From assembly GCA_965240325.2 (NCBI GenBank), contig OZ251249.1, positions 248,001 to 312,000 on the forward strand: a stretch of DNA of 64,000 bases, written 5' to 3'. The translations under genes were made by a program, and so were the position numbers. The notes under the pieces are model-generated. The model searched no databases and was not told the DNA's origin. It saw only the letters and a program-made list of their open reading frames with translations. Shown here piece after piece: positions 56,790 through 57,449 of the stretch (position 1 is its first letter; every line of letters starts with the position of its first letter). The stretch comes from Rebecca billardiae RCC1528. Lineage: Eukaryota > Protista > Haptophyta.

Positions 56790-57449
56790 TGTCGAAGGGA
56801 ATGAAGAGCCCGAAACGACTGAGCTAAATCGGTTCGCGCCAACCGATTTAGCTCAGTCGTTTCGGGCTCTTCATTCCCTTCGACACAACCGTAAAGTCAC
56901 CTGTTCGAATCCAGCGACCGACCGACGCGGGCAACTCTTGGCCTTTCACGCGAAGCGCTTTCGACCTCGCGAGAGCCTCGCGGCTCCGGGGGGGAATGAA
57001 AAGCGAGGAGTCGGCAAAAAGACGAACGAAAGAGGGGAGCACGAAGAAGATGACCGACAAAGAAAGACGACGACAGAAAAAACGAGCACGGTCCGCGACG
57101 CGCAACCTCCGGGTACAGTCGCCCGGGTGAACAACAAAGACACAAAAAGAGCCTCACAAAGCCACAGCAGCAAAGAAGGGCTCACCGCCCACAAAAGACG
57201 GAGTCTCTACGAAGCCACAGAGCAGACGAGCACGCAGGGTGGAACACCTGGGAAAGACCAGGCGGGGAGAGAAAAACCTCGACAACAAATCCGTCAGAAC
57301 ACTGGACGGGACTACAGCCCCTCGCGGGGTGTCCCACAGGAGACTTACGGTTATGTCGAAGGGAATGAAGAGCCCGAAACGACTGAGCTAAATCGGTTGG
57401 CGCGAACCGATTTAGCTCAGTCGTTTCGGGCTCTTCATTCCCTTCGACA
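56790..57449. mobile_element. 660-bp non-coding element with 96-bp palindromic (hairpin) termini, TGT...ACA ends and 5-bp TSD AGTAT
   Basis: The termini at 56790-56885 and 57354-57449 each have perfect 45-bp arms, with loops CGCGCC and GGCGCG. AGTAT flanks the element at 56785-56789 and 57450-57454. Confidence 0.9.

Follow-up and report, generated by a model that had tools for sequence, protein, structure and literature searches.

A young, polymorphic 660-bp insertion with palindromic ends in a haptophyte genome, probably a non-autonomous transposon of integrase type

A 660-bp element with palindromic ends, spanning positions 56790 to 57449 of a 64,000-nucleotide stretch of the haptophyte Rebecca billardiae RCC1528 (assembly GCA_965240325.2, contig OZ251249.1, positions 248,001 to 312,000 of the forward strand; hereafter the window, whose coordinates we use throughout), inserted very recently and as one piece. 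It begins with TGT, ends with ACA and is bordered on either side by AGTAT. An almost identical allele of the same locus lacks the element and has a single AGTAT. We consider that it is probably a young, non-autonomous DNA transposon resembling a MITE (a miniature transposable element with inverted repeats), which would have been inserted in trans by a DDE enzyme of the integrase clade, its palindromic tips acting as cis elements. An earlier note on this DNA, made from the sequence alone, had drawn attention to the element; its claims are taken up below with the results that bear on them.

The element ends in two inverted palindromes

In each terminal unit of the element (56790-56885 on the left and 57354-57449 on the right), a 6-nt centre separates a 45-nt arm from its exact reverse complement. 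The 45-nt arm is the same in all four cases, and the left 96-mer, read on the opposite strand, gives exactly the right one. The centres read CGCGCC in the left unit and GGCGCG in the right. Within a 96-mer, a single pair is mismatched, that of positions 46 and 51, where the left unit has C/C and the right unit G/G; nothing else gives a 96-mer any orientation, and a repeat search scores each unit as two 48-nt arms, 98% identical, with zero spacer. The earlier note had described arms, loops and exact reverse complements in these terms and had read the ends as inverted rather than arranged as in long terminal repeat (LTR) elements. Both descriptions hold, since the two ends are identical at 96 of 96 positions when compared in inverted orientation and at 94 of 96 when compared directly. 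The imperfect inverted similarity that it had seen further inward reaches positions 56904 and 57336, which gives terminal inverted repeats (TIRs) of 115 nt (56790-56904) and 114 nt (57336-57449), 97.4% identical over 115 aligned positions in a self-blast. All the differences lie in the inner 19 nt, which contain 16 matches and 3 differences (including one indel), against none in the outer 96 (Fisher p = 0.004).

The AGTAT copies occupy positions 56785-56789 and 57450-57454. The bases beyond them differ between the two sides, so the target site duplication (TSD) is exactly 5 bp long. The left copy forms the end of a short (TA)n tract (56774-56789), which is the context of the target. Even when as many as three mismatches are allowed, the terminal 17-mer has no occurrence in the window other than the four arm ends, with 0.03 expected. 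A de novo scan of the window for inverted TG..CA termini accompanied by a duplication of 4-6 bp returned a single long hit, the element itself. A chance origin of this end architecture is excluded. Folded as single-stranded DNA, the left hairpin reaches -58.2 kcal/mol (z -18.5) and the right one -58.4 kcal/mol (z -19.4); the single strand of the element can alternatively fold as a panhandle. Between the TIRs lies a unique, non-coding interior (56905-57335), A-rich and T-poor on the + strand, in which no tandem repeats, no tRNA and no Rfam family at gathering score were found. Measured between the palindromes (56886-57353), its composition is strand-skewed, with 32.7% A and 9.6% T on the + strand and balanced G and C; it differs in this from the arms, the flanks and the window as a whole.

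The orientation of the ends bears on whether the element could be a terminal-repeat retrotransposon in miniature (TRIM), i.e., a small LTR retroelement copied through RNA and inserted by an LTR integrase, with 96-bp terminal repeats that are palindromic by chance. TG...CA tips combined with a 5-bp duplication form the signature classically associated with LTR elements, the size is that of a TRIM (short repeats of 96 bp around a 468-bp interior), the interior has an excess of A over T on one strand, and LTR elements dominate the annotated repeats of the alga Diacronema lutheri (PMC8379373). However, the repeats of LTR retrotransposons and TRIMs are direct, and those of the element are inverted: a direct comparison leaves 2 differences in 96 positions despite the young, polymorphic insertion, an inverted one leaves none, and each of the two differences exactly mirrors the other. 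The inverted similarity also extends 19 nt inward. Neither a TGG-type primer-binding site after the repeats nor a purine tract before them was found in either orientation, and a tRNA-related match is absent as well. This explanation is very improbable, and we treat it as effectively excluded.

An empty allele reveals a recent insertion in one piece

Two contigs of the Logan assembly of run ERR14847148 document the history of the site. The first (L022) is identical to positions 12440-20076 of the window (100% over 7637 bp), which shows that the organism of the window is present in this assembly. The second (L025, ERR14847148_2441) was retrieved by looking up the open reading frame (ORF) of the last exon of DHX15, the helicase gene next to the element. 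It aligns to positions 58621-57450 and then runs straight on to 56789-56687, the two matches overlapping by 5 nt. Once 56790-57449 and one AGTAT are removed from the window, the two sequences differ by 1 mismatch in 1270 nt, and the contig has the (TA)n tract followed by a single AGTAT. The empty allele is read from this one contig; another Logan contig also carries the helicase exons. L025 is 1270 bp long; it breaks off within a GC-rich DHX15 intron (58621) at one end and 103 bp past the insertion site (56687) at the other, where a variant, low coverage or a further polymorphism may account for the break. The corresponding contig of a more distantly related organism (L024, SRR30664515) stops 130 bp beyond the DHX15 stop codon, and its downstream part does not align.

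We rejected a spliced transcript as the source of the empty site. The 153-bp intron of DHX15 is still present in the contig, and the segment missing from it has no canonical splice pair at any of its 12 possible borders, so the contig represents genomic DNA. Hence, the 660 bp inserted as a single unit, and the empty allele fixes the target duplication at exactly 5 bp, AGTAT. The earlier note had proposed precisely such a recent, one-piece insertion with a 5-bp TSD, and had named an empty AGTAT site as the thing to look for; L025 provides it. Because the insertion is polymorphic on a background that is 99.9-100% identical, it is very recent, and because a near-identical haplotype of this organism still has the empty site, the family of the element was active very recently. 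Since the contig runs straight through the junction, probably few or no reads of ERR14847148 carry the filled allele, judging from the behaviour of k-mer assemblers.

The same allele weighs on a non-natural origin, whether as a fold-back assembly artefact, as vector or adapter DNA, or as a laboratory transposon tool. Long-read assemblies can yield perfect palindromes, and some laboratory transposition systems produce 5-bp duplications with TG...CA ends. Yet an exact 5-bp duplication together with a matching empty allele is the product of transposition and not of misassembly, which rules out the fold-back artefact, and the element has no similarity at blastn sensitivity in 72,556 plasmids or 50,697 phage records, and its arm 27-mer has no hit in bacterial or archaeal genomes. 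An artefact or laboratory origin is thus extremely improbable and, like the retroelement explanation, effectively excluded.

Two independent palindrome insertions are also ruled out by an empty allele with a single AGTAT. A different composite origin can be considered, in which the 96-bp palindrome is the true mobile unit, made of two 45-bp ends back to back, and two nearby units moved together by their outer ends with 468 bp of captured DNA. Each 96-mer indeed has the anatomy of a minimal MITE, and four identical arms are what recent copies of one small element would show. The interior, with 33% A and 10% T, resembles neither arms nor flanks and contains no arm-derived motifs, which is compatible with capture. 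On the other hand, the palindromes do not give way inward to unrelated host DNA but to sequences that repeat each other in inverted form (16 matches over 19 nt), a pattern that independent insertion events would not produce; neither palindrome bears a 5-bp duplication of its own, and the 64-kb window contains no solo 96-bp unit. We regard this composite as quite unlikely.

The element is non-coding and new to the collections searched

No Pfam domain was found in the ORFs of the element. One frame is open through its entire length (a 295-aa ORF at 56686-57573), the palindromes being free of stop codons in that frame on both strands; this ORF, which has neither a domain nor a homologue, seems to be an artefact of base composition that gene prediction might take for a gene. 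The 219-aa frame open through the palindromes has no match among 1.84 billion representative proteins. The element is therefore non-coding and, as a consequence, non-autonomous, which the earlier note had proposed and which the lack of any domain or protein relative corroborates.

Searches for functional RNAs and internal repeats were likewise negative. ARAGORN found no tRNA in the element, and no Rfam family reached its gathering score; the matches of the hairpins to miRNA families are far below Rfam gathering scores and of the generic kind that any perfect hairpin gives. At the inner edge of the left TIR, the 10-mer at 56903-56912 is identical to the canonical T-loop motif of tRNAs (GTTCGAATCC), and the arms contain words that resemble a D-arm. 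A tRNA-derived origin, as in short interspersed nuclear elements, was considered on account of this motif and rejected given the blank ARAGORN and Rfam results; the resemblance is probably a coincidence. The element has no tandem repeats, and arm k-mers occur in its interior at the level of shuffled sequence only, so that no subterminal binding-site repeats can be recognised.

The window contains no further copy of the element, whether sought by blastn of the whole sequence or with the terminal 17-mer at three mismatches or fewer. Outside the window, searches were blank for the arm 27-mer in the viral contigs of IMG/VR (exact matches) and in bacterial and archaeal genomes, and for the terminal 24-mer in JGI metagenomes. 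The structural pattern (a 12-nt tip, 58-88 nt and the complementary tip) was not found in viral contigs, and the whole element has no similarity at blastn sensitivity in the plasmid and phage records mentioned above. Judged by sequence, the family is new to all the collections searched, and the earlier note, which did not recognise it as a described family, agrees with the lack of relatives among viral, metagenome, prokaryote, plasmid, phage and protein collections. Mobile-element genes are missing from the surroundings as well: none of the 26 large ORFs of the window has a transposase, integrase, reverse transcriptase or Rep domain, and neither the element nor the scanned window ORFs contain a capsid, polymerase, primase, Rep or integrase gene.

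One apparent group of relatives was discarded. Twenty-one metagenome loci (L001-L021) match the structural pattern and have the same 12-nt tips as the element, but they are unrelated to it: they lie on low-GC contigs, have unrelated interiors, and their stems extend outward into a conserved flank. These loci, and those from L026 onward, represent a widespread interspersed hairpin repeat of bacteria with a conserved stem, GGTCCCTGAGCYTGTCGAAGGGAA and its complement, around variable GC-rich inner hairpins. Its flank motif is found in more than 120 genome contigs, mainly of Saprospiraceae, Chitinophagales and other Bacteroidota, and also of Treponema, Microbacterium and others. The 12-mer that this repeat has in common with the element is a coincidence.

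Termini and target duplication point to an integrase-type enzyme

With a length of 660 bp (MITEs being shorter than about 800 bp), no coding capacity, TIRs of 115 nt and a 5-bp TSD, the element resembles a MITE. The signature formed by the TGTCG...CGACA tips, the 115-bp TIRs, the 5-bp TSD and the TA-rich target fits published DDE elements of integrase type, and from this fit we infer the class of the enzyme. Ends of the form TG..CA with a duplication of 4-6 bp are the published signature of integrase-clade DDE enzymes, as the earlier note had argued in agreement with the definitions in the literature. The TSDs are of 3-6 bp in LTR elements and retroviruses, 4 or 5 bp in Ginger2 and 6 bp in Polinton (PMC10045372). 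Elements of the Ginger2/TDD group have TGTNR tips, TIRs of 50-180 bp, TSDs of 4 bp (5 bp in TDD-4 and TDD-5) and AT-rich targets (PMC2836005).

Under the explanation that we favour, a DDE enzyme of the retroviral-integrase clade would have acted in trans to insert the element. It may have been a transposase of Ginger2/TDD type, or else an rve integrase supplied by a resident LTR element, polinton-like virus (PLV) or virophage-type element; LTR elements, as the dominant annotated repeats of D. lutheri (PMC8379373), are a possible source of such an integrase. The enzyme would bind the TGTCG... tips and expose CA-3'OH ends; it would join these to phosphates of the target with a 5-bp stagger, and repair of the resulting gaps would produce the 5-bp duplication. 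Each palindrome would present the terminal recognition sequence twice in opposite orientations, as a minimal back-to-back pair of 45-bp ends, and this doubling may aid enzyme binding or the pairing of the ends. A role of the palindromes in replication is unnecessary to explain the observations.

Among the closest published systems are the Ginger2/TDD elements (TDD-4 and TDD-5 in Dictyostelium, Ginger2 in animals; Bao, Kapitonov and Jurka 2010, PMC2836005). Their TGTNR...YNACA tips correspond to TGTCG (56790-56794) and CGACA (57445-57449), the TIRs of 115 and 114 nt fall inside their 50-180 bp range, the 5-bp TSD is that of TDD-4/5, and its one known site lies in AT-rich DNA, as theirs do. The element differs from them in that no Ginger-type transposase is linked to it (no ORF in the element or window encodes an H2C2 zinc finger with a Gypsy-integrase-like DDE transposase), in that AGTAT does not conform to RTATAY, and in its palindromic TIR tips, which are unmentioned for Ginger. 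The hosts given for Ginger are Dictyostelium, several animals and one fungal vestige, with no mention of algae or haptophytes (PMC2836005).

Several observations weigh against an integrase-type transposon. The element is represented by one copy, and no autonomous partner, integrase or transposase was found among the 26 large window ORFs. The enzyme class is suggested by the signatures of the termini and TSD. At the one site available, AGTAT matches the Ginger2 RTATAY logo inexactly. Palindromic ends have no mention in the papers on integrase-type transposons that were consulted, PMC2836005 and PMC10045372 among them. Finally, the four 45-nt arms are identical while the adjoining inner repeat has diverged by 16% (p = 0.004), which is not what plain cut-and-paste inheritance predicts. 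The contrast implies either that the palindromes are very young or that a copying process keeps the arms alike, as the hairpin model discussed below offers.

Hairpin-ended replicons as an alternative

A copying process of this kind is the core of another explanation, the most fully documented version of the hairpin-primed or hairpin-resolved replication that the earlier note had proposed, in which the element is a miniature non-coding derivative of an integrating virus-like element, such as a PLV or virophage. Once excised, its palindromes would fold and would prime replication or be resolved during it, and an rve integrase would insert the copies. Hairpin-primed replication with palindromic ends would have a precedent, by analogy, in a 2026 preprint on the endogenous virophages and PLVs of Halocafeteria. 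These have palindromes (e.g., of 52 nt) inside the tips of their TIRs, beside the TSDs, and the palindromes are associated with particular RVE integrases and with replication genes other than pPolB; a hairpin-priming model was proposed for them (2026 preprint).

The architecture of our element agrees with theirs, as its 96-nt palindromes occupy the extremities of the TIRs and abut AGTAT on both sides. Its 5-bp TSD falls within the ranges of mavirus and Maverick (5-6 bp) and of PLVs with rve-type integrases (4-6 bp). Both ends form very stable hairpins, and a single strand could form a panhandle. Identical arms next to a diverged inner repeat are expected if the arms are recopied from each other. 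PLVs and virophage-like elements are reported in algal genomes, one of them associated with a haptophyte.

Other observations argue against a virus-like origin. The hairpin-priming model is a proposal even for the Halocafeteria elements. A single copy carries no flip/flop information, and a left end that is the reverse complement of the right one is equally given by an ordinary TIR. The arm and the hairpin structure are unmatched in the viral contigs of IMG/VR. The Halocafeteria virophages and PLVs are multi-kb, gene-carrying elements (related ones span 5.5-40 kb) of a stramenopile host, whereas ours is a 660-bp non-coding unit of a haptophyte-like alga, with no sequence or gene link to them. 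The capsid, packaging ATPase, pPolB or primase-helicase, and rve genes of Polintons, Mavericks and PLVs are absent from this copy, which could be at most a non-coding derivative of such elements, and the termini of Polintons and Mavericks proper are reported as 5'-AG...TC-3', unlike the TG...CA of the element. Taken at its fullest, this alternative would make the element a non-coding parasite of a hairpin-ended, integrase-inserting PLV or virophage in a haptophyte, with the 96-nt palindromes as replication origins recopied arm from arm in each cycle. We hold this to be a possible but unlikely explanation, and continue to favour a transposon inserted by an integrase-type enzyme.

Three other systems with self-complementary sequences invite comparison. 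The inverted terminal repeats of parvovirus-type replicons resemble the ends of the element in being self-complementary and hairpin-forming, with an asymmetric centre in opposite orientations at the two ends. They differ in that no HUH Rep domain was found in the element or in the scanned window ORFs, and in that TG...CA tips together with a fixed 5-bp TSD indicate a DDE integrase rather than integration by Rep. Foldback (FB-type) elements have long TIRs made of tandem subrepeats and a 9-bp TSD. The element, in contrast, has no tandem repeats and a TSD of 5 bp. REPINs are moved by an HUH enzyme and are not known to leave a target duplication. These doublets of bacterial REP hairpins, mobilised by RAYT (PMC3116915, PMC3337134), contain REP sequences of 20-40 bp and serve here as an analogy only.

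Genomic context

The genes of the window are ordinary nuclear genes of a photosynthetic eukaryote. They include a phosphoribulokinase gene (17270-18706), whose nearest named relative is from Pavlova gyrans (76% identity), the DHX15/PRP43 splicing helicase gene (57590-59924, minus strand), a gene for an RCC1 protein and a large REJ/EF-hand ORF. G+C content varies between 57% and 85% along the window, in agreement with the 73% of Diacronema lutheri, in which LTR elements are the main repeats of an automated repeat annotation (PMC8379373). By themselves, these resemblances suggest a pavlovophyte haptophyte as the most likely host, as a lead rather than a proof. From the DHX15/PRP43 stop codon it is about 135 bp downstream to the insertion, which borders on the short (TA)n tract; long (TA)n tracts are present in other intergenic DNA of the window. 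DHX15 has two short and extremely GC-rich introns (58048-58205 and 58553-58646), which reach up to about 82% G+C and contain imperfect inverted repeats as well as GC-rich ones. Both are missing from the uninterrupted gene of the lower-GC relative L024.

Other repeats and ORFs of the window are noted here as separate observations. An AT-rich imperfect palindrome of about 130 nt (56150-56279; core arms of about 38 nt, 56176-56258) lies in the same intergenic region, 530 bp upstream of the element. It folds at -40.8 kcal/mol (z -9.9), has no obvious TSD and is unlike the arms of the element; it could be a decayed foldback MITE or an intergenic terminator. An inverted duplication of about 340 nt (52599-52941 and 54813-55154, 89-90% identity) has ends that are not transposon-like. 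Its copies, which hold the starts of two small ORFs facing each other (155 and 153 aa), enclose about 1.9 kb with a 331-aa ORF without Pfam domain. The region 46072-48694, flanked by two long (TA)n microsatellites (46079-46149 and 48555-48694), comprises two tandem units of about 378 bp followed by an inverted one, with blocks of 125 nt and 100 nt at 91-93% identity. It overlaps a domain-free 377-aa ORF, and its overall architecture is foldback-like. A 480-aa ORF (32005-33447, minus strand) has a match (HemolysinCabind, E 3e-12) to the family of RTX calcium-binding nonapeptide repeats, which is unusual for a eukaryotic nuclear gene; the match may reflect Gly/Asp-rich low complexity in GC-rich DNA. 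An exact-protein look-up of three further window ORFs returned no record.

Discussion

The element is real, young and unusual, and only part of its mechanism can be inferred. Its kind is known, that of a TIR element with an integrase-type signature. What is new is that palindromic TGT...ACA tips lie directly against a 5-bp TSD in a non-coding unit of 660 bp whose insertion is polymorphic. Together, the empty and filled alleles document directly that a transposition took place very recently in a pavlovophyte-like alga. The architecture of the ends is rare and has only just been noted for protist virophages and PLVs (2026 preprint). A non-coding unit of this size is the simplest object in which to separate a double binding site, a composite of minimal MITEs and a hairpin replication origin.

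The polymorphic insertion also places two 96-nt hairpins close to the stop codon of an essential splicing helicase gene, on its downstream side, and is thus a natural case for asking about effects on 3'-end formation or on small RNAs. If the element did prove to be a parasite of a virus-like element, it would be the first MITE-like derivative of a hairpin-ended, integrase-inserting class, and a very small natural system in which reads and copy censuses could show whether the hairpin model holds.

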